Virus record (IMG/VR): IMGVR_UViG_3300044957_000763
Location: 186,001 to 250,000 of that record
Reading direction: 5' to 3' (one strand)
DNA: 64,000 bases
Made by a program: the position numbers and the translations under genes. Below the pieces are notes generated by a model. The model did not search any database and had not been told where the DNA came from. It was given only the letters and a program-made list of their open reading frames with translations. This document shows, piece by piece, positions 17,949-47,815 of this stretch; within the stretch, counting starts at the first letter, position 1; every line of letters starts with the position of its first letter.

Positions 17949-19004
17949 TCATAGCAACTTGCTCTCTCTCATTGAACCTGTGGTGAGGATTACATACTCT
18001 GTGTTCTCGCGCAACTCGTCAATATTGAATGCTCCGCTATAGCTTAGACCACTGGCGATTCCGCCAAGAATTTCTGCAAGCAGTTCAGACGTATCACCCT
18101 TATACGGCAAAAGCCTGTCAATGCCCTCAGCCGCAATACCTCTGCGTTTTCCAGTATCCTTGTGACGCTCTTGTGCTGTATATGAGCTCATTCCGTAGTA
18201 TTCTTTGAATTGCCCTTCTGGCAACTCGAGCAACGCACCAGGTGTGCTACTCGTGGCAGCAAGCATAGAACCAAGACACACGGCATTCGCACCAAAAGCA
18301 AGTGCTTTTACGATGTCTCCAGATGTCCTTAAACCACCGTCCGCGATGATGGGCACACCGGATTGCCTCGATGCGTCTGCGCAGTCAATAACACTGGCCA
18401 ATGTTGGCATGCCGTGACCAGTGACCATTCGAGTCGTGCATGCGCTTCCACCGCCAATACCAACCCGCACTGCATCCGCACCAGCATCAACCATGCGCAG
18501 GAAACCATGCCTGGTTGCAATGTTGCCGGCAATAACATCTAAGTGTGGGTATTTGGTTTTGACCTCGGTAATCGTATTGCAAACACTGTCGCTGTCTCCG
18601 TGTGCAATGTCAATGATAACACCAGCAAGATGTTCATGGTCTAACCATCCACCATTGATTTCCTCTCCTTTGACACCGATGCTTGCAATACCCCTTACCT
18701 GAGTAAATACATCACGCTTAAAGCATTTTTGAACAAACAGTTTCATTTGTTCTTGGTATTTTTCTGTGCTCATGAAGCGATGCATGAACCCGTAACTACC
18801 AGACTCCCACATATCACACATCATGTCTGACTCAGTGATGGTCGACATATTGGTTGAAACAACTGGGTGCTTGATTTTGATGTTTCTAGTGAGTTGGGTT
18901 TCTAGCGTTGGGGCCGTCCGACTTGGCACATTGCTGTGTTGTGGAACCAACAGGACATCATCAAATGACAAAACGGAATTCTGATACAATGTTGGACTAT
19001 TCAT
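17949..19004 (-). CDS. IMP dehydrogenase / GMP reductase family protein without CBS domains
   Basis: SFDDVLLVP, IDIAHG, VIAGNIAT, GIGGGSACTTR (catalytic Cys), IIADGG, YYGMSS; GMSS is more GMPR-like. Confidence 0.9.
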   Translation of the reverse strand: MNSPTLYQNSVLSFDDVLLVPQHSNVPSRTAPTLETQLTRNIKIKHPVVSTNMSTITESDMMCDMWESGSYGFMHRFMSTEKYQEQMKLFVQKCFKRDVFTQVRGIASIGVKGEEINGGWLDHEHLAGVIIDIAHGDSDSVCNTITEVKTKYPHLDVIAGNIATRHGFLRMVDAGADAVRVGIGGGSACTTRMVTGHGMPTLASVIDCADASRQSGVPIIADGGLRTSGDIVKALAFGANAVCLGSMLAATSSTPGALLELPEGQFKEYYGMSSYTAQERHKDTGKRRGIAAEGIDRLLPYKGDTSELLAEILGGIASGLSYSGAFNIDELRENTEYVILTTGSMRESKLL

Positions 19005-19076
19005 GCCAACTTGATTATGCCAAAAACCGCCCACTTAAAATAATGTTTCTTGAAAACAGAATGTGTAGTTCTAAAA

Positions 19077-19170
19077 TGGTACCCGCACCGGGATTTGAAC
19101 CCGGAAGACTCCCTAATCTGGGGACAATGCACGTTATAAGCGTGGTGTTTTACCGTTAAACTATACGGGC
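19077..19170 (-). tRNA. tRNA-Ile(UAU) with 24-nt variable region
   Basis: GCCCGTA/TGCGGGT acceptor, CCACG-CT TAT AA-CGTGC, T arm CCGGG-TTCAAAT-CCCGG, encoded CCA. Confidence 0.8.
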
Positions 19171-19186
19171 GTTTGAATTAAGATTG

Positions 19187-19261
19187 TGGGCCCTGTGGGA
19201 TTCGAACCCACGCTCTAGCGGTTATGAGCCGCTTGCTTTAGGCCGACTAAGCTAAAGGCCC
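19187..19261 (-). tRNA. tRNA with CAU anticodon, Ile2 (lysidine) type
   Basis: GGGCCTT/AGGGCCC acceptor, AGCGG-CT CAT AA-CCGCT; resembles Ile2 rather than fMet. Confidence 0.8.
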
Positions 19262-19284
19262 TCAATCTTTTTAGCAAAACTTTT

Positions 19285-19369
19285 AGGAGAGTGTGGGATT
19301 TGAACCCACGGGACATTGCTGCCCACCAGTTTTCAAGACTGACCCGATAAACCGCTCCGGCAACTCTCC
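19285..19369 (-). tRNA. tRNA-Ser(UGA)
   Basis: Cloverleaf with long V-arm, loop CT TGA AA. Confidence 0.9.
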
Positions 19370-19402
19370 GTGTAGTCCTGGGCACCGAAGTGCCCAGATA
19401 AT

Positions 19403-19810
19403 TTAGTTCTTCGGCTTGTCCAACGCATCCAGACTCAGGACAAGGACATCGCCCTCTCGAGTGTAATCGAGGTGATACGTTCCTTTGGCAAGAGGGGTGC
19501 CGCGCAAATCGCACATTAACTCGGTGAAATTCACCGAGCGACTAACTGTGCTGTCGAGCGCAAGCCGCTTGCCGAGCTTAACTCGGTTTGCGTTTGGTTT
19601 CTGGTGGAATGACAGGCCAATGGCGTTGCGACTCTTGTCAACGCGAATCCTGGTGTGAGTTGCAAGGCGGTTTAGACCAAGCTCTTGACCAAGAACGTTG
19701 TTGATAAGCAGTGTGGCAACATTGCCAGATGACGAAATTGTCGCACGAGGCCGCTTACTACGCTTGTCGTTGCGACTTGGTTTGTAGTTTTCCCAAGCCA
19801 TGAGTTTCAT
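19403..19810 (-). CDS. Hypothetical basic protein
   Basis: ORF inside tRNA region; start uncertain. Confidence 0.6.
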   Translation of the reverse strand: MKLMAWENYKPSRNDKRSKRPRATISSSGNVATLLINNVLGQELGLNRLATHTRIRVDKSRNAIGLSFHQKPNANRVKLGKRLALDSTVSRSVNFTELMCDLRGTPLAKGTYHLDYTREGDVLVLSLDALDKPKN

Positions 19811-19841
19811 CTTACCACACGGTTGGCGAACTTTGCAAGCC

Positions 19842-20060
19842 CTACTCTTCTTCGGATAAACCACTAGGTCGCTTGCTACGCTTTCTCAGCACGCTACCAA
19901 GTTCGCCCCATAGATTTCGCGCTTGCTCTTCTGATACCTCTACAATATGATGCCCAACCAGTATTTGTATGGTTCCCCTGTTGGAACTACTGTGGTCTCG
20001 CACAATGGGGTCTGCGTGGTATGTACCGCGAAACATGTTTAATAGCCTTTTGATAAACAT
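19842..20060 (-). CDS. Hypothetical protein
   Basis: 72-aa ORF. Confidence 0.55.
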   Translation of the reverse strand: MFIKRLLNMFRGTYHADPIVRDHSSSNRGTIQILVGHHIVEVSEEQARNLWGELGSVLRKRSKRPSGLSEEE

Positions 20061-20099
20061 AATGCGTTTATACAGCTTATTCTATATTATAGCATAAAT

Positions 20100-20173
20100 T
20101 GGAGGTCGTACAGGGAATCAAACCCTGCTTTCGGCGTTACGAGTGCCGTGCATCGTCACAATGCTTTACGACC
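20100..20173 (-). tRNA. tRNA-Thr(CGU)
   Basis: GGTCGTA/TACGACC, loop CT CGT AA, T loop TTTGATT (atypical), CCA. Confidence 0.8.
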
Positions 20174-20178
20174 GAAAT

Positions 20179-20264
20179 TGGAGCCGACACTGGGAATTGA
20201 ACCCAGACTGGATTTCTCCACCTGCTTACCAAGCAGGCTCCGTGACCACTAGGATAATGTCGGC
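20179..20264 (-). tRNA. tRNA-Thr(GGU) with class II-type V-arm
   Basis: GCCGACA/TGTCGGC, CCTGC-TT GGT AA-GCAGG, V-arm TGGA-GAAA-TCCA. Confidence 0.8.
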
Positions 20265-20387
20265 ATGAATTCTGGGGCTCCTGCTTTGGTTGTAGCAACT
20301 CCCTTAGCAGTACGGTTACTCGGAGTTGCTATTCATCCTTTCCCATACTAACCCCAGAAACTTAGAGGACTGAGTACTTTGAAGTAC

Positions 20388-21014
20388 TTAGTTATGTGCC
20401 ATTTGAGGTACTTTGGTCAATCTTTCAAAATCAGTCCTGTCTTTGTTGGCATAGATTTTCCAAATGGCTAGGTCAAGTTCTGCAGAATCAACACCAATTT
20501 CATCTGCATAATCCAAATAGATTTTTTCTAGGCGATTGTATTCTTTTTTGCTTCCTGGGGTTGATGTCGGAATATTTGACTCTCCCAAATAATCGCGCAT
20601 AAACTTAAGCAAATGGGTGTCAATGACACCAAAACGCACATTAGGCCTAGTGCAAGTTAAAAAGAAACGAGAGGTTTTAGGACCAATACCATGAATCGAC
20701 TCCAAATCATCGACCGTGCAATTGAAAAGGTCAACACCACTTGAAATTAAAGCACGGAAACAATGCGCAAGCCTGTTGTATTGTCCTAGGCGCGACTCCA
20801 TCAGTTTTTCAAACAAAGCACCTTCAGAATCCATTGTGCGGATTTTGTCAAAAGGGGATGCGCCAACTTTTCCTTTGCTTAAAAAAGAATCAAGAAGCCG
20901 CACTTGCACACTTGCTTTTTTCCCCGCAGCAACAATACAGAAAAGAAGAAAGCACTCTAACTCTTCTTTGGTTCTGTCGAAAATAATTGTATTGTTAGGG
21001 TCTGGAAATCTCAC
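20388..21014 (-). CDS. Helix-hairpin-helix DNA glycosylase-like protein (HhH-GPD/Ogg-like)
   Basis: LESIHGIGPKTSRFFL HhH motif, VIDTHLLKF, ELDLAIW; GTG start. Confidence 0.8.
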   Translation of the reverse strand: MRFPDPNNTIIFDRTKEELECFLLFCIVAAGKKASVQVRLLDSFLSKGKVGASPFDKIRTMDSEGALFEKLMESRLGQYNRLAHCFRALISSGVDLFNCTVDDLESIHGIGPKTSRFFLTCTRPNVRFGVIDTHLLKFMRDYLGESNIPTSTPGSKKEYNRLEKIYLDYADEIGVDSAELDLAIWKIYANKDRTDFERLTKVPQMAHN

Positions 21015-21042
21015 ATGTGGAAGTATACCACATGTGAAAAAA

Positions 21043-21123
21043 TGGCGACCTGTACGGGATTCGAACCCGTCTGATGTCTACCGTGACAGGGTAGTGGGAA
21101 CAACCAAGCTCCCCCCACAGGCC
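21043..21123 (-). tRNA. tRNA-Asp(GUC)
   Basis: CTACC-CT GTC AC-GGTAG, G73, CCA. Confidence 0.9.
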
Positions 21124-21129
21124 ATAAAT

Positions 21130-21205
21130 TGGAGCACCAGGTGGGACTCGAACCCACTACCTCCACATTACCAATGTGGCGTTCATCCATATGAACTTCA
21201 AGTGC
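21130..21205 (-). tRNA. tRNA-Thr(GGU)
   Basis: CCACA-TT GGT AA-TGTGG, CCA. Confidence 0.85.
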
Positions 21206-21211
21206 ATAAAT

Positions 21212-21287
21212 TGGAGCACGCGACAGGATTCAAACCTGCTACATCCGCATTACAAGTGCGGCGTTCAATCTCATGAACTTCGCGTGC
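21212..21287 (-). tRNA. tRNA-Thr(UGU)
   Basis: CCGCA-CT TGT AA-TGCGG, T loop TTTGAAT, CCA. Confidence 0.85.
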
Positions 21288-21294
21288 AAAAATC

Positions 21295-21377
21295 TGGAGC
21301 TGGCGACAGGATTCGAACCTGCGATGTGGAATCCCTGTTTACAAAACAGGTGCAATCGACCTCTATGCAACGCCAGC
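21295..21377 (-). tRNA. tRNA-Thr(UGU) with 11-nt variable region
   Basis: CCTGT-TT TGT AA-ACAGG, V region GAT-TCCAC-ATC, CCA. Confidence 0.8.
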
Positions 21378-21657: not shown

Positions 21658-21739
21658 TGGCCCCTCGAGCGGGATTCGAACCCACATTTTCAGTTCCATT
21701 ACGCTGGACGGTTTAGAAGACCGCGACGACTACCGAGGG
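21658..21739 (-). tRNA. D-arm-less tRNA-Arg(UCU)-like RNA with expanded variable region
   Basis: CCCTCGG/TCGAGGG, 8-nt connector, GCGGT-CT TCT AA-ACCGT, 22-nt V region, canonical T arm, CCA. Confidence 0.75.
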
Positions 21740-22176
21740 ATATGTTGATGAATGGCATTGTGCAGAACAGTGTCTGTATACTGAATTGGTATATTTGGCA
21801 TATTTGATTTGAACGCCTTGGCCTTTTCTTCAATTGAAATTAAGTAATCAGCAGTCAATCCAATCTCAATACATTGCTCAACCTCTTGTGGTTCAATGTA
21901 CCTAAAACCACATTGAGTTCCGTTGAGATAATATGACTTATCATCACGCAGCCCAAGTGCAAAATTTTCTGGAATGGCATACCATTCAGGTGCAATTGAT
22001 AAATCTTTGTTGAGTCCGTGCCTGGATTGCCCTGATTCTGTCAATTCAATTAGGCACAATTTCAGTTTTGAGTCCAGTGTTAGCGGAACTTCGAGGACTT
22101 CAAATAGAGACCATGTTATTTTATTGAGTTGATGCACTGGCAATGAGTTAACTTGGATTTTGATTAATTCACTCAT
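21730..22176 (-). CDS. Hypothetical protein
   Basis: ORF; stop codon lies within the 5' end of the downstream tRNA-like gene. Confidence 0.65.
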   Translation of the reverse strand: MSELIKIQVNSLPVHQLNKITWSLFEVLEVPLTLDSKLKLCLIELTESGQSRHGLNKDLSIAPEWYAIPENFALGLRDDKSYYLNGTQCGFRYIEPQEVEQCIEIGLTADYLISIEEKAKAFKSNMPNIPIQYTDTVLHNAIHQHIPR

Positions 22177-22363
22177 TTTGAAACGTCTCATCTAGCTTGG
22201 TAGAAACTTTGACAACGAAATCTTGAATGTCTTCCTTGAGCAATCCAAGTACATCAGCGACTGGTTGCTCAGCCGCTTTCCCGCGCAATCTGTTCATCAA
22301 AGAACTTGTGATGTCAACTGTCATGCCAACTGCGTGAAGATTTGGGTGGTTCTCGATACTCAT
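22169..22363 (-). CDS. Hypothetical protein
   Basis: 64-aa ORF. Confidence 0.55.
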   Translation of the reverse strand: MSIENHPNLHAVGMTVDITSSLMNRLRGKAAEQPVADVLGLLKEDIQDFVVKVSTKLDETFQNE

Positions 22364-24848: not shown

Positions 24849-24927
24849 TGGAGCGCATGACAGGAATCGAACCTGCATTTTCATCCCTTAACTTATCTAG
24901 TTTCGAAGACTAGTGGTATACATGCGC
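24849..24927 (-). tRNA. D-arm-less tRNA-Arg(UCG)-like RNA with expanded variable region
   Basis: GCGCATG/CATGCGC, 7-nt connector, CTAGT-CT TCG AA-ACTAG, 20-nt V region, T arm GCAGG-TTCGATT-CCTGT, CCA. Confidence 0.75.
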
Positions 24928-26308: not shown

Positions 26309-26384
26309 TGGTCCTCCTGACCGGACTTGAACCGGCTACTTCCTGACAGACAATCAGGTGCTTCGACTCTTGAGCTTCAGAAGG
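26309..26384 (-). tRNA. Atypical tRNA-Asp(GUC)
   Basis: CCTGA-TT GTC TG-TCAGG; pyrimidine at position 37 and A73 are atypical for Asp. Confidence 0.6.
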
Positions 26385-28752: not shown

Positions 28753-28841
28753 TGGAGGAGAGCAACGGAATTGAACCGTAGCCACTTGCGCGGCCGTAAC
28801 GCTTTCCAGGCGTACCCCATCACCGTCAGGGATTACTCTCC
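28753..28841 (-). tRNA. tRNA-Ser(GGA)
   Basis: Loop CT GGA AA, long V-arm, CCA. Confidence 0.9.
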
Positions 28842-31064: not shown

Positions 31065-31148
31065 TGGTGCCGCACCTCGGAATCGAACCGAGACAAGAGG
31101 ATGATTTTAAGTCATTTGCTTTTACCAGTTTAGCTACTCCAGTGCGGC
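31065..31148 (-). tRNA. tRNA-Leu(UAA) with 5-nt insertion after the acceptor stem and no V-arm
   Basis: GCCGCAC-TGGAG-TA-D arm; loop CT TAA AA; V region CTCTTGT. Confidence 0.75.
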
Positions 31149-31173: not shown

Positions 31174-31250
31174 TGGTGCTCCTACTCAGATTCGAACTGA
31201 GACTTTCATAGGTTTGAGCTATGTGACTCTACCAATTGGCCTATAGGAGC
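31174..31250 (-). tRNA. tRNA-Leu(CAA) lacking V-arm
   Basis: CATAG-CT CAA AC-CTATG, 5-nt V loop, A73, CCA. Confidence 0.85.
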
Positions 31251-31523: not shown

Positions 31524-31601
31524 TGGTCCCCCCTGCGAGACTCGAACTCGCAATACTTTCGGTTCTGAGCCGAACGACTTTACCAATTTGCCCAAAGGGG
31601 G
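31524..31601 (-). tRNA. tRNA-Leu(CAG) lacking V-arm
   Basis: TTCGG-CT CAG AA-CCGAA, short V loop, CCA. Confidence 0.85.
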
Positions 31602-32880: not shown

Positions 32881-33321
32881 ATGGACCCACTTACACGACT
32901 ATTTATGGAAGCATTTGGTCTGCCGTTATCTCAAACGGTCACTAATCAAATCAATTCCAACATTTTGCAAATCCCAGTCAATTTCTATGAGATGAGAAGT
33001 GGTGTAGTTATCGAACTTGCACTGCCTGGTTACTCTCGAGAAAATGTTGATGTGAGTATCAATGGACGAAGACTCAAACTCGTAGCCACGTCTCGTGTCT
33101 CCGAGGGTTTTTTGGAATCCAAGGTATATTCACATAATTTTGCTCATGTGAACCTAGACAGAGAAATTGAATTGCCTGAATTTTTAGATACTTCAGACGT
33201 TCAAGTCAGTATGAATGACGGATTGCTACGAGTCATTATTCAGAGGCGCAACGAAGAAGAATACAAGTTGAAAATCACCGAACACACAGACCAGTATCTA
33301 CAAGACGAGGACGGAGCTTAA
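32881..33321 (+). CDS. Small heat shock protein (Hsp20)
   Basis: ELALPGYSRENVDVSI...LDREIELP...MNDGLLRVII. Confidence 0.85.
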   Translation: MDPLTRLFMEAFGLPLSQTVTNQINSNILQIPVNFYEMRSGVVIELALPGYSRENVDVSINGRRLKLVATSRVSEGFLESKVYSHNFAHVNLDREIELPEFLDTSDVQVSMNDGLLRVIIQRRNEEEYKLKITEHTDQYLQDEDGA

Positions 33322-46804: not shown

Positions 46805-47815
46805 AGCACTTTGACAGTTTAATAGAATTTCGGCGGTATGGCGTCGGACAAAAAGATATTGCATCGCAAGATGCAGAAAGGGACCAGGTTCTTCAGACCC
46901 CCGCCTTGTAAGTTCGCTTATGAGGTCAGCCATGCAAGTCCAACTTCCTTGGGTTTCGCGCTTCACGGTGCGGAACTAAGCCCCCGCGAAGGGGCGCGAC
47001 AGAAGATGGAGGATAAATGTTGTCAGTGGCCTGGCCGACGGTGAAGCCATTGACAATCATGACACGGCAGTGTCATAAAACCTCACGCAAAACATCGGTG
47101 TCTAAGAAGTCAAGGATAGCCTCGGGGTTCGAGTTGTTGCAGACAAGGGCTTCGTGAGATTTACCTTCGGGTACTTCTTTAGCATAACCAAAGGCAAGAG
47201 CATTGCGGTATAGAATGTAACAGTGGTTACACACTGACCTATTCCATGATGCAGGCGTCTTGAAGTTGAGCAGAGTAGCACGGCAATGTGAAATGTAATA
47301 TTCGGCGTGTTGTATTCGGTAGACCGAAAGGTTTATGGAGCAGCAGCGCGCGCACGTCGAACTGAAGTAGCAAACTAGCTCATTCGGTAGAGCAGTTCCT
47401 TTCAACGGAACAGGTAGTTGGTTCAAGCCCAACGCTTGCAAAAATGCGAAAGCCGCGTGCCGCACAAAACGAAAATGGCTTACTTCCTGAGTGGCAACAT
47501 GTCAGGAGCGACGACAACTCGCAAGGTTGTGGTTGTGTTGGTGAGAACGAAAGATGGTGGGGAGCCCCCCTTTACTGCCCGGCAGGGTAGACGGCAATTA
47601 GAACTTGCTCAGTAGTTTTGTGAACAGGCTCGATAAGCCAATCGAGCATAAACAATGGCAGTCATGCCGACTGACTGGTAGCAATACCAGTGGACAAGCT
47701 GGCAAGCGATGCGCAGACATCGTGTAATCCAGTATGGCGAGTCGGATATGTAGGTGTAGTCTCGACCTGCATGCAGTCCCAGAACCCTGGCCTTGTGTCA
47801 GAGTTCTGGGACTTT
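46805..47815 (+). ncRNA. Giant structured ncRNA, GOLLD-like
   Basis: TGTGTATAAT at 46789-46798; ~1 kb rich in UUCG/GNRA-capped hairpins; embedded tRNA-like element; intrinsic terminator at the 3' end. Confidence 0.65.
47369..47441 (+). tRNA. tRNA-like element with UCA anticodon embedded in the giant ncRNA
   Basis: GCTC-ATTCGGTA-GAGC D arm, GTTCC-TT TCA AC-GGAAC, GTTGG-TTCAAGC-CCAAC; acceptor 5/7 paired, no CCA. Confidence 0.6.

Follow-up and report, generated by a model that had tools for sequence, protein, structure and literature searches.

The window analysed here, a stretch of 64,000 nucleotides, lies in a 478,840-bp phage genome with 63 tRNA genes, three of which, an Ile(UAU), a Thr(GGU) and a Thr(UGU), carry extra sequence in the variable region. 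All of the tRNA genes and parts considered here lie on the minus strand:

19077-19170 (-), tRNA-Ile(UAU), 94 nt, with 7/5 acceptor/T stems, A73, an encoded CCA and two adjacent anticodon-arm-like hairpins
19105-19128 (-), its 24-nt variable region, comprising a 4-nt leader, the hairpin UCCC-CAGAUUA-GGGA at 19110-19124 with the conserved GAU at 19116-19118, and a 5-nt trailer before the T stem
19186-19261 (-), tRNA with a CAU anticodon (Met or Ile2 type; 70.3 bits), immediately upstream of Ile(UAU) in the array
20100-20173 (-), tRNA-Thr(CGU), 74 nt, with a short variable loop, next to the extra-armed Thr(GGU)
20179-20264 (-), tRNA-Thr(GGU), 86 nt, with G1-C72, C2-G71, U73, a 3-nt connector and a 3-bp D stem with a 10-nt loop (a class-II-type core)
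20207-20220 (-), its 14-nt variable arm, UGGA-GAAA-UCCA plus two unpaired bases (GU)
21130-21205 (-), ordinary short-loop paralogue tRNA-Thr(GGU), 76 nt
21212-21287 (-), ordinary short-loop paralogue tRNA-Thr(UGU), 76 nt
21295-21377 (-), tRNA-Thr(UGU), 83 nt, with G1-C72, C2-G71, U73 and a D arm of the conserved phage Thr family type (GCA...TGC, 13:22 mismatch)
21323-21333 (-), its 11-nt A/C-rich variable loop, GAUUCCACAUC

ARAGORN calls the three extra-armed genes at exactly these coordinates, and the Rfam tRNA model RF00005 matches all three over model positions 1-71, with 57.7 bits for Ile(UAU), 50.4 for Thr(GGU) and 54.5 for Thr(UGU) against a gathering score of 29. The only large insertions fall between the anticodon stem and the T stem, the one in Ile(UAU) being 22 nt relative to the model. 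The extra arms of Ile(UAU) and Thr(GGU) both form in the minimum-free-energy (MFE) fold as part of a five-armed cloverleaf, the Thr(GGU) arm with an MFE of -3.7 kcal/mol against -0.1 for shuffles. Hence, the unusual variable regions reported by a first-pass annotation of the sequence are confirmed, as are the short-loop paralogues of both Thr genes. One correction is needed: the 11-nt region of Thr(UGU), which had been described as a mini arm, is not a predicted hairpin (MFE 0.0), and its homologues share an A/C-rich 11-12-nt region without conserved pairing, indicating a long variable loop instead. The genome also holds a 93-nt Gln(UUG) with a long arm outside the window and, conversely, two Leu tRNAs with short variable loops, along with other irregular forms such as an 81-nt Asp tRNA; the window itself holds three degenerate tRNA-like sequences.

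These architectures are not peculiar to this phage but recur, far beyond chance, in many independent phage contigs with compensatory changes in their stems. A pattern scan that did not specify the arm sequence, but required an encoded ACCA and a consensus T loop, recovered at least 72 distinct viral Ile(UAU) genes with the same extra arm. It is also present in two related huge phages (G002 and G004) and in the cultured phages ENFP1, S-SRM01, S-SKS1 and Phosso, two of whose four copies are not annotated as tRNAs at all. A further 65 came from bacterial tRNA arrays in a scan that required the motif YAGAT, and which therefore cannot be used to measure conservation. In the alignment of the 72 viral sequences, the arm is a covarying 4-5-bp stem with a 7-nt loop of the form Y-A-G-A-U-N-R. 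The covariation score is 0.807 against 0.175 for shuffles (0 of 500 as high), and the inner three pairs are 98-100% paired with 14, 36 and 17 double-change cells. The loop opens with C or U, followed by A in 64, G in 71, A in 70 and U in 68 of the 72 sequences. As these sequences are related by descent, such counts are not independent events.

The GAU-centred loop is strongly specific to tRNAs with the UAU anticodon: it occurs in 68 of 72 viral Ile(UAU) arms, but in 0 of 49 Thr arms, 0 of 53 arms on other class-I isotypes and 2 of 427 Leu/Ser/Tyr arms. The window gene belongs to this family, which we define by a UAU anticodon loop, A73, and a variable-region hairpin with a GAU-centred 7-nt loop closed by at least 3 bp and followed by 4-6 nt before the T stem. 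In by-catch not selected for Ile, 14 of 21 phage Ile(UAU) genes carry the arm, against 0 of 64 Ile(GAU) genes. The published bacterial Ile identity set comprises A73, C4-G69, U12-A23, C29-G41, G/C34, A35, U36, A37 and A38 (PMC9976931). The window Ile(UAU) has A73, C4-G69 and U12-A23. However, its decoding arm, with U34 and A29-U41, lacks both G34 (or lysidine-34) and C29-G41, whereas the extra arm supplies G-A-U and a C-G pair at the equivalent positions. More generally, the 29:41-equivalent pair is C-G in 115 of 132 extra arms, but in only 27 of 137 UAU arms and in 61 of 100 Ile(GAU) arms.

The two Thr genes belong to a second lineage of 49 sequences, 48 of which have G1 and C2, with a class-II-type core and a short, mostly GNRA-capped arm. 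We define it by a 3-bp D stem with a 13:22 mismatch and a 9-11-nt loop, and a variable region of at least 9 nt. The typical arm consists of 1 nt, then 2-4 bp, a tetraloop (GNRA in 26) and 3-4 nt; the mean MFE is -2.2 against -0.36 for shuffles, with 13 distinct 3-bp stems among 31. Thr(GGU) fits this arm subtype, its closest relative being a Thr(CGU) in locus L066 with the same 'tta' connector and a clear 7/5 fold. Thr(UGU) fits the loop subtype, whose 11-12-nt region is shared by seven further members of the family (for example, in loci L279, L341, L362 and L371). Acceptor-stem pairs and the anticodon make up the bacterial Thr identity set (PMC9976931). In E. coli these are G1-C72, C2-G71, G35 and U36, and both armed Thr genes of the window have them.

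Among known systems, the long-armed class II tRNAs of bacteria (tRNALeu, tRNASer, tRNATyr and tRNASec) likewise have an extra stem-loop between the anticodon and T arms. The Thr family additionally shares the 3-bp D stem and enlarged D loop typical of class II cores, and its arm geometry of 1 nt, 3-4 bp, a small loop and 3 nt is that of bacterial tRNATyr. Nevertheless, the anticodons and acceptor-end determinants are those of Ile and Thr, and the Ile arm, with its long unpaired flanks (2-4 and 4-5 nt) and sequence-conserved 7-nt loop, is unlike any Leu, Ser or Tyr arm. The claim in the first-pass annotation that bacterial variable arms are confined to Leu, Ser, Tyr and Sec is too absolute, as the allo-tRNAs (Mukai et al., 2017, PMC5389517) were already an exception. 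These are bacterial and phage tRNAs with long arms and non-Ser anticodons, of which UAU is among the predominant ones. Acidobacteria are one of their main sources, and many of our bacterial hits are also acidobacterial; some sub-types in our set have a compact D arm with a tetraloop and a long anticodon stem. However, allo-tRNAs are defined by 8/4 or 9/3 acceptor/T stems, a tRNASec-like D arm (long stem, tetraloop) and G73/U73, and were predicted to be Ser acceptors. In contrast, the window Ile(UAU) is 7/5 with a 4-bp D stem, a 7-nt loop with GG, and A73, while the Thr genes have U73 but C2-G71 and large D loops. Thr(UGU) also folds as 7/5, and an 8/4 alternative for Thr(GGU), though possible on paper, is not supported by its homologue in L066, where it would give a U:C mismatch. 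No GAU-loop motif is mentioned in the text of that work as consulted, although partial overlap of the two sets cannot be excluded. The nematode nev-tRNAs (Hamashima et al., 2012, PMC3333845) are variable-arm tRNAs with Ile(UAU) or Gly anticodons, but are eukaryotic, derived from class II tRNALeu and charged with Leu, whereas here the body is Ile-like and the arm carries an Ile-anticodon motif.

With moderate confidence, we propose that all three genes are genuine tRNAs belonging to two conserved, mainly phage-borne lineages that added an extra arm while keeping their cognate amino-acid identity. In this view, the second anticodon-arm-like hairpin of Ile(UAU), joined to the T stem by the usual 4-5 nt, presents the determinants that bacterial IleRS reads on tRNAIle(GAU), namely G34-A35-U36 and a C29-G41-type pair, while the true UAU arm decodes AUA on the ribosome. 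The phage would thereby obtain an AUA decoder that needs no TilS/lysidine yet is still charged by a host IleRS that handles U34 poorly. E. coli IleRS charges tRNAIle(UAU) poorly, with a 100-fold preference difference relative to the Mycoplasma mobile IleRS. M. mobile faced the same problem of decoding AUA with an unmodified UAU anticodon without TilS, and solved it by changing the enzyme (Arg865; Taniguchi et al., 2013, PMC3575796). A phage cannot change the host enzyme, and we propose that the tRNA carries a surrogate GAU arm instead. This phage has no IleRS/LeuRS, no Ser/ThrRS, no GlnRS and no TilS, and AUA makes up 20% of its Ile codons, while four of five bacterial genomes carrying the tRNA in arrays have strong TilS-like matches.

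Several features sit uneasily with this proposal. A variable arm normally points away from the anticodon-binding domains of IleRS, requiring an arm-swap conformer or an unprecedented binding mode. The arm of most members lacks A37, the t6A site, although t6A37 is a strong determinant for many bacterial IleRS; its '33' position is A rather than U, and together with the mostly-U '37' position this suggests that it is not itself a decoding loop. Further, Bacillus subtilis can use a tRNAIle(UAU) without such an arm, and ten arm-less phage Ile(UAU) genes were also seen. The Thr genes, for their part, are members of a phage tRNAThr lineage rebuilt on a class-II (tRNATyr-like) core, which would be charged by ThrRS. 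Their arm most likely changes how other tRNA-binding proteins, such as defense or toxin nucleases, see the molecule, though this role is unproven and nothing ties the arm to any nuclease. In 43 of 45 loci the armed Thr(UGU) is the only Thr(UGU) gene seen, which fits an ordinary working tRNA as well as any special role. The anatomy, conservation and covariation of the arms, the specificity of GAU to UAU tRNAs and the retained cognate determinants are directly established by the sequences, whereas the reading of the arm by IleRS, the role of the Thr arm, and expression and charging themselves are inferences.

The interpretation offered in the first-pass annotation, mis-acylation with Ser or Leu at Thr/Ile codons or shielding from nucleases, is only partly supported. 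Recruitment of SerRS by the long arm, or of LeuRS by A73 plus the arm, with insertion of Ser or Leu at ACC, ACA or AUA codons, seems the least likely of the alternatives and is not supported by the sequences. It is true that the long arm is the main SerRS determinant, that nematode variable-arm tRNAs with a UAU anticodon are leucylated, that allo-tRNAs with non-Ser anticodons exist in bacteria and that several of the phage's own tRNASer have U73 like its tRNAThr. However, 48 of the 49 armed Thr tRNAs have C2-G71, a documented SerRS antideterminant in E. coli tRNALeu, whereas bacterial tRNASer start with G1-G2, G2-C71 being conserved in most of them. The Thr arms of the lineage have only 2-4 bp with 3-4 unpaired 3' bases (Tyr-like), and those of the two window genes 0-4 bp with 2-3 unpaired 3' bases. 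Bacterial tRNASer arms have 5-7 bp; in phage tRNASer these are followed by 1 unpaired base, and the phage's own tRNASer have GG starts and 5-6-bp arms. E. coli LeuRS does not use the long arm, instead requiring A73 and a specific core (A15-U48, the G18G19 register, A20a and a 3-bp D stem). Ile(UAU) has A73, with a D arm of class-I type (4 bp, a 7-nt loop and no 20a). Mis-acylation also gives no reason for a conserved GAU, which had been overlooked and which points to IleRS, and the genome reads well under the standard code. It is similarly unlikely that the armed molecules are regulatory or decoy RNAs, or pre-tRNAs whose hairpin is removed or serves only in processing. Mukai et al. found allo-tRNA(UAU) variants to be inactive as suppressors in E. 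coli, suggesting non-translational roles linked to mobile elements or toxin-antitoxin systems, and the degenerate tRNA-like sequences of the window might be seen in this light. However, their test required Ser insertion and, we infer, an Ile-accepting tRNA would also have scored negative. Moreover, all tRNA hallmarks are intact (7/5 stems, G18G19, the T loop, encoded CCA and a perfect Y-U-UAU-A-A loop), the armed gene is the only Ile(UAU) or Thr(UGU) gene in most loci, AUA and ACA are frequent codons in this phage, and no bacterial pathway is known, to our knowledge, that excises a variable-region hairpin.

Shielding remains a live, if unlikely, alternative, especially for the Thr arms. The extra arms, including the GAU hairpin, might be protective or 'self' markers that block or decoy host anticodon nucleases and toxins, or spare phage tRNAs from a phage-induced attack on host tRNAs, with charging by the ordinary route through the UAU, GGU or UGU anticodon. 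Defense nucleases that cut tRNAThr(GGU/UGU/CGU) and tRNAIle(GAU) exist (HepS), and phage tRNAs diverge to escape such enzymes (van den Berg et al., 2023, PMC10264068; PARIS, Retron Ec78 PtuAB, HepS). Like the genomes in those cases, this one encodes tRNA-repair functions, namely an RtcB RNA ligase and a CCA-adding-type domain. It also keeps armed and unarmed copies of Thr(GGU), Thr(UGU) and Gln(UUG) side by side, and short GNRA-capped arms occur on many isotypes in phages. Nevertheless, the described escapes are point changes in the anticodon stem-loop, and neither an added variable arm as an escape device nor a nuclease sensitive to such an arm is documented in the papers found. Shielding also explains neither why the Ile(UAU) loop is so often GAU while those of the Thr and other class-I isotypes never are, nor why the arm is absent from Ile(GAU) tRNAs, the known nuclease target, and in most phage loci there is no unarmed paralogue. 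Rather less likely still, the arms could be selectively neutral expansions frozen in successful phage tRNA lineages. The variable region is the one place where a tRNA tolerates insertions, the ribosome, EF-Tu and processing enzymes already accept class II tRNAs, phage arrays hold other irregular tRNAs, and arm length and sequence vary widely in the Thr family. Against this, the stems are maintained by compensatory changes, the 3-nt loop motif in Ile is held at 94-99% while the stem sequences turn over, and the Thr family has a co-adapted class-II-type D arm with a fixed 1-nt lead and 3-4-nt trail.

Taken furthest, and more tentatively, the tRNAIle(UAU) of many phages and bacterial tRNA arrays may be a 'two-headed' tRNA, in which one anticodon arm (UAU) is read by the ribosome and a second, non-decoding arm (GAU) by isoleucyl-tRNA synthetase. 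The identity determinant would then have been physically separated from the decoding anticodon and moved into the variable region, a natural way to make a TilS-independent AUA decoder acceptable to any host IleRS, with possible parallels such as a CAU tRNA carrying a UGU-type second arm in locus L465. Textbook tRNA biology allows long variable arms only on Leu, Ser, Tyr and Sec tRNAs in bacteria, and treats the anticodon as the IleRS determinant. Yet most of the phage-encoded AUA decoders sampled without selection carry an extra, sequence-conserved GAU hairpin, a design that also turns up in cultured phages of cyanobacteria, rhizobia and lactobacilli and in bacterial tRNA arrays. The Thr family shows that phages have rebuilt further isotypes on class II frames, which bears on how tRNA-targeting defenses and phage tRNAs co-evolve. 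If the arm is read by IleRS, it would be a new way of encoding tRNA identity, would explain how phages supply AUA decoding without TilS, and would offer a portable design for engineering orthogonal or host-independent tRNAs.

The 478,840-bp virus record that carries the tRNA genes has direct terminal repeats and is estimated to be complete, and it represents a huge phage with 44.5% G+C; the window comprises bases 186,001-250,000 of this record. ARAGORN finds 63 tRNA genes in the genome and 30 in the window, nearly all with an encoded CCA. The stretch at 19077-21377 is part of a minus-strand tRNA array, which is interrupted by small ORFs, namely a 153-aa protein with no family match and a 208-aa Ogg/HhH-like protein. 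A megablast search of the region against GenBank phages returned no match, and searches for related loci with the two small ORFs inside the array (21730-22191 and 19403-19864) recovered no relatives.

The first-pass annotation had proposed long variable arms on tRNAs that normally lack them, Ile(UAU), Thr(GGU) and Thr(UGU), and ARAGORN calls the three genes with exactly the ends assigned there. The tRNA model of Rfam matches each over its full length, at 57.7, 50.4 and 54.5 bits against a gathering score of 29, with the only sizeable insertions lying between the anticodon stem and the T stem. The variable regions measure 24 nt in Ile(UAU), 14 nt in Thr(GGU) and 11 nt in Thr(UGU). Thermodynamic folding gives a five-armed cloverleaf as the minimum-energy structure for Ile(UAU) and Thr(GGU), but no hairpin for the 11-nt region of Thr(UGU). 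The short-loop Thr(GGU) and Thr(UGU) paralogues that had been noted are also present. The observation therefore stands, with the single correction that the third case, which had been described as a mini arm, is a long loop and not an arm. The same genome holds further irregular or otherwise unusual tRNAs and associated genes, as follows:

Genome C1:256595-256687, minus strand, outside the window and about 6.6 kb beyond its end: a 93-nt tRNA-Gln(UUG) with a 20-nt variable region (CCAU-GCAGA-AUGG, a 4-bp arm), U1-A72 and G73, next to two ordinary Gln tRNAs.
Window 31174-31250 and 31524-31601, minus strand: tRNA-Leu(CAA) (77 nt) and tRNA-Leu(CAG) (78 nt), which keep a Leu-type D arm and A73 but have lost the long arm and have only 5-6-nt variable loops.
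Window 21043-21123, minus strand: an 81-nt tRNA-Asp(GUC) in the same array, with an enlarged D arm, a 3-nt connector and a 7-nt variable loop.
Window 28753-28841, minus strand: tRNA-Ser(GGA), which fits an 8/4 acceptor/T-stem fold better than 7/5, since the outer T-stem pair would be U:U while A8 can pair with the next base; it has U73.
Window 24852-24927, 26312-26384 and 31068-31143, minus strand: three further Rfam tRNA matches (40.6, 43.3 and 36.8 bits) that ARAGORN does not call at its default settings, with odd anticodon loops or a mismatched acceptor stem, which may be degenerate or highly irregular tRNAs.
Window 47368-47442, plus strand, and genome C1:157728-157803, plus strand: tRNAs with UCA and CUA anticodons, which would be opal and amber suppressors.
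Window 17949-19034, minus strand: an IMP dehydrogenase/GMP reductase family gene (323 bits) directly beside the tRNA array.
Genome C1:385082-386122, plus strand, C1:162698-164041, plus strand, and C1:260097-260468, minus strand: an RtcB RNA ligase (231 bits), a CCA-adding/poly(A)-polymerase-type domain inside a 1024-aa ORF, and a 266-aa HisRS-like (HisZ-like) protein next to an ion-channel gene.

These armed tRNAs are not private oddities of this phage. A neighbouring protein led us to five related huge-phage records, of which two (G002 and G004) have Ile(UAU) genes with 23- and 25-nt variable regions and one (G003) has a normal version. Armed Thr(UGU), Gln, Asn, Met, Arg and Cys genes also occur, and the related phage G005 has 85-nt Gln(UUG) and Gln(CUG) genes with GNRA-capped arms. 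In the related huge phages G002-G004 (loci L019, L021-L023 and L026), many tRNA-model matches are 100-140 nt long and are explained by ARAGORN only through 21-55-nt ‘introns’ of unexplained nature, besides a few of 246-1131 nt that could be group I introns. We then scanned 2.9 million viral contigs with a pattern specifying only the UAU anticodon loop, a long gap, a consensus T loop and ACCA, which returned more than 119 stretches. Together with the by-catch of two Thr scans, this gave 72 distinct armed Ile(UAU) genes, a count that is a lower bound, leaves out genes lacking an encoded CCA or a consensus T loop and whose members share ancestry, such that they are not independent events. In the loci chosen for Thr, and therefore unbiased for Ile, 14 of 21 Ile(UAU) genes carry the arm, whereas none of 64 Ile(GAU) genes does.

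A BLAST search against GenBank phages recovered the same design in four cultured phages, viz., Levilactobacillus phage ENFP1, Synechococcus phages S-SRM01 and S-SKS1, and the 469-kb Sinorhizobium phage Phosso. The two Synechococcus copies (GenBank MW015081.1, about 32943-33032, and HQ633071.1, about 178508-178598, respectively) are not annotated as tRNAs in the deposited records. A stricter pattern that included YAGAT, and hence presupposed the motif, found 99 stretches in bacterial genomes with 73 armed Ile(UAU) genes, most of which lie inside dense tRNA arrays of Acidobacteria and Proteobacteria. Four of five such genomes tested have strong TilS-type matches. One bacterial locus, L454 (787-5709 of a 1.36-Mb contig of the Armatimonadota MAG SZAS-3), has a near-identical armed Ile(UAU) (92% over 105 nt) and a run of six Thr tRNAs, one of them an armed Thr(CGU), and two of its proteins are 51% identical to window ORFs. 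This is either a related element inside a bacterial contig or a hint that the host is an Armatimonadota bacterium.

The variable region of the armed Ile(UAU) genes comprises, in order, a 2-4-nt leader, a 4-5-bp stem, a 7-nt loop, and 4-5 nt before the T stem, the last being the length of an ordinary class I variable loop. In the alignment of the 72 viral sequences, the inner three stem pairs are 98-100% paired, with 14, 36 and 17 cells changed on both sides, and the covariation score is 0.807 against 0.175 for shuffles (0 of 500 as high). Sliding the partner columns halves the pairing, and the T stem, used as an internal control, behaves alike. The loop reads C/U, A (64 of 72), G (71), A (70), U (68), N, A/G. 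Thus, GAU sits exactly where an anticodon would and is as conserved as the T-loop signature. The motif is specific: a GAU-centred loop occurs in 68 of 72 viral Ile(UAU) arms, 0 of 49 armed Thr tRNAs, 0 of 53 armed tRNAs of other class I isotypes, and 2 of 427 Leu/Ser/Tyr arms. We also asked whether extra arms more generally mimic the anticodon of their own tRNA or of a sibling, and this was rejected for all isotypes but Ile (0 of 102). A 96-nt tRNA with a CAU anticodon loop in the tRNA array of a Pyrinomonadaceae MAG (L465:2608-2703) has a variable arm with a 4-bp stem and the loop CUUGUAA, which is a perfect tRNAThr(UGU)-type anticodon loop, along with the discriminator U73, and it may be a second kind of ‘two-headed’ tRNA. 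In the Ile arms, the stem pair equivalent to 29:41 is C-G in 115 of 132 cases, but in only 27 of 137 of the UAU arms of the same molecules and in 61 of 100 phage and array Ile(GAU) anticodon arms.

The published bacterial Ile identity set consists of A73, C4-G69, U12-A23, D-loop bases, C29-G41, G or lysidine 34, A35, U36, t6A37 and A38. The tRNA-Ile(UAU) of the window has A73, C4-G69 and U12-A23, but its decoding arm has U34 and A29-U41, whereas the extra arm supplies G-A-U and C-G at the matching places. E. coli IleRS charges tRNAIle(UAU) inefficiently, and Mycoplasma mobile, which lacks TilS, had to change a residue of its IleRS to use UAU. Further, anticodon variants strongly reduce charging by both bacterial IleRS types. 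We searched the phage for an IleRS, LeuRS, SerRS, ThrRS, GlnRS or TilS that might read the arms and found none, the only such protein being the 266-aa HisRS-like one. The phage uses AUA for 20% of its Ile codons, about 12 per 1000 codons.

The most economical reading is that the extra arm is a surrogate tRNAIle(GAU) anticodon arm for the host IleRS, while the UAU arm decodes AUA. The architecture looks like a tandem duplication of an anticodon arm, in the order D stem, 1 nt, UAU arm, linker, GAU arm, 4-5 nt and T stem, and either arm could in principle stack under the D stem. The A at loop position 2 and the mostly-U position 6 argue that the second loop does not itself decode. What the sequences establish is the anatomy of the arms, their conservation and covariation, the specificity of GAU to the UAU tRNAs, and the retention of cognate determinants; that IleRS reads the arm, by whatever route it would reach it, is inferred, as are the expression and charging of these tRNAs and any role for the arm of the Thr genes. 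The usual absence of an A37 equivalent in the arm counts against a simple mimic.

For Thr, scans and by-catch gave at least 49 distinct armed tRNAs, mostly UGU, which again share ancestry and are not independent events. They share G1 and C2 (48 of 49), U73 (32) or A73 (17), and a conserved D arm with a 3-bp stem, a 13:22 mismatch and a 9-11-nt loop, which is a class II-type core. Their variable region is built as 1 nt, then 2-4 bp, a small loop (GNRA in 26, GAAA in 17), then 3-4 nt. The arms fold better than shuffles (mean -2.2 against -0.36 kcal/mol), and the stems vary by compensatory change, with 13 different 3-bp stems among 31. Eight members, including the Thr(UGU) of the window, instead have an unstructured A/C-rich 11-12-nt loop. 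The Thr(GGU) of the window fits the arm subtype, but a pattern scan for it was dominated by D-loop ‘TGGTAA’ matches of ordinary tRNAs and yielded no armed Thr(GGU) (0 of 31); the only close relatives found are Thr(CGU) genes in a 255-kb viral contig (L066) and in the Armatimonadota MAG locus L454. The same short GNRA arm occurs sporadically on Asn, Cys, Gln, Gly, Lys, Met, Arg, His and Pro tRNAs of phages.

The first-pass annotation had inferred a possible mis-acylation, with Ser or Leu inserted at Thr or Ile codons, and this part of its interpretation is disfavoured by the sequences. Serine identity rests on the size and orientation of the arm plus conserved G1-C72 and G2-C71, and C2-G71 is a listed antideterminant against SerRS in E. 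coli tRNALeu. The armed Thr tRNAs have C2-G71 and short arms with 3-4 unpaired 3' bases, whereas the phage's own tRNASer have GG starts and 5-6-bp arms with one unpaired base, although three or four of its five tRNASer have U73 instead of G73. E. coli LeuRS needs A73 and a particular D/T-loop core, not the arm, and the Ile(UAU) D arm is of class I type. Consistent with this property of LeuRS, arm-less Leu tRNAs are common in the phage loci sampled (19 of 76 Leu(UAA), 30 of 74 Leu(UAG) and 24 of 36 Leu(CAA)). The genome also reads normally under the standard code: despite the tRNAs with UCA and CUA anticodons, coding density is about the same under the standard code (0.869) as with TGA (0.863) or TAG (0.881) read as sense, so we claim no recoding. 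Mis-charging cannot be excluded from sequence alone, but nothing in the sequences calls for it. The role of the Thr arm is the weakest part of this picture. Defence nucleases that cut tRNAThr and tRNAIle are known (HepS), phage tRNAs are thought to diverge to escape such enzymes, and this phage carries RtcB and the CCA-adding-type domain and keeps armed and unarmed copies side by side. Elsewhere, though, the armed Thr(UGU) is usually the only copy in the locus (43 of 45 loci), so it is inferred to be first of all a working tRNA, and a neutral ‘frozen’ expansion is a serious rival for Thr.

The closest described entities are the allo-tRNAs of Mukai et al. (PMC5389517), long-armed tRNAs with non-Ser anticodons, UAU being among the predominant ones, many of which come from Acidobacteria. 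They are defined by 8/4 or 9/3 stems, a tRNASec-like D arm and G73/U73, and the genes in the window fail those defining features. An 8/4 fold of Thr(GGU) was considered because U8 could pair with G65, but it was rejected because the homologue in L066 cannot form that pair. The phage (8/4) tRNASer described by Mukai et al. have U73, as does the tRNA-Ser(GGA) of this phage. Some acidobacterial members of our Ile set have compact D arms and long anticodon stems, and a partial overlap of the two sets is possible. Their finding that amber suppressors derived from allo-tRNA(UAU) did not insert Ser in E. coli is, by our inference, compatible with an Ile identity. Literature searches confined to open-access papers and preprints found no description of the GAU arm or of class II-type phage tRNAThr.

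Taken together, the observation is real and much more general than could be seen from a single stretch of sequence, while the interpretation first attached to it is supported only in part, with mis-acylation disfavoured. The conserved GAU hairpin of the Ile arm is a striking and, as far as we can find, undescribed feature, present in cultured phages, and it comes with a concrete, testable mechanism for how a phage tRNA that decodes AUA may be accepted by the IleRS of its host.
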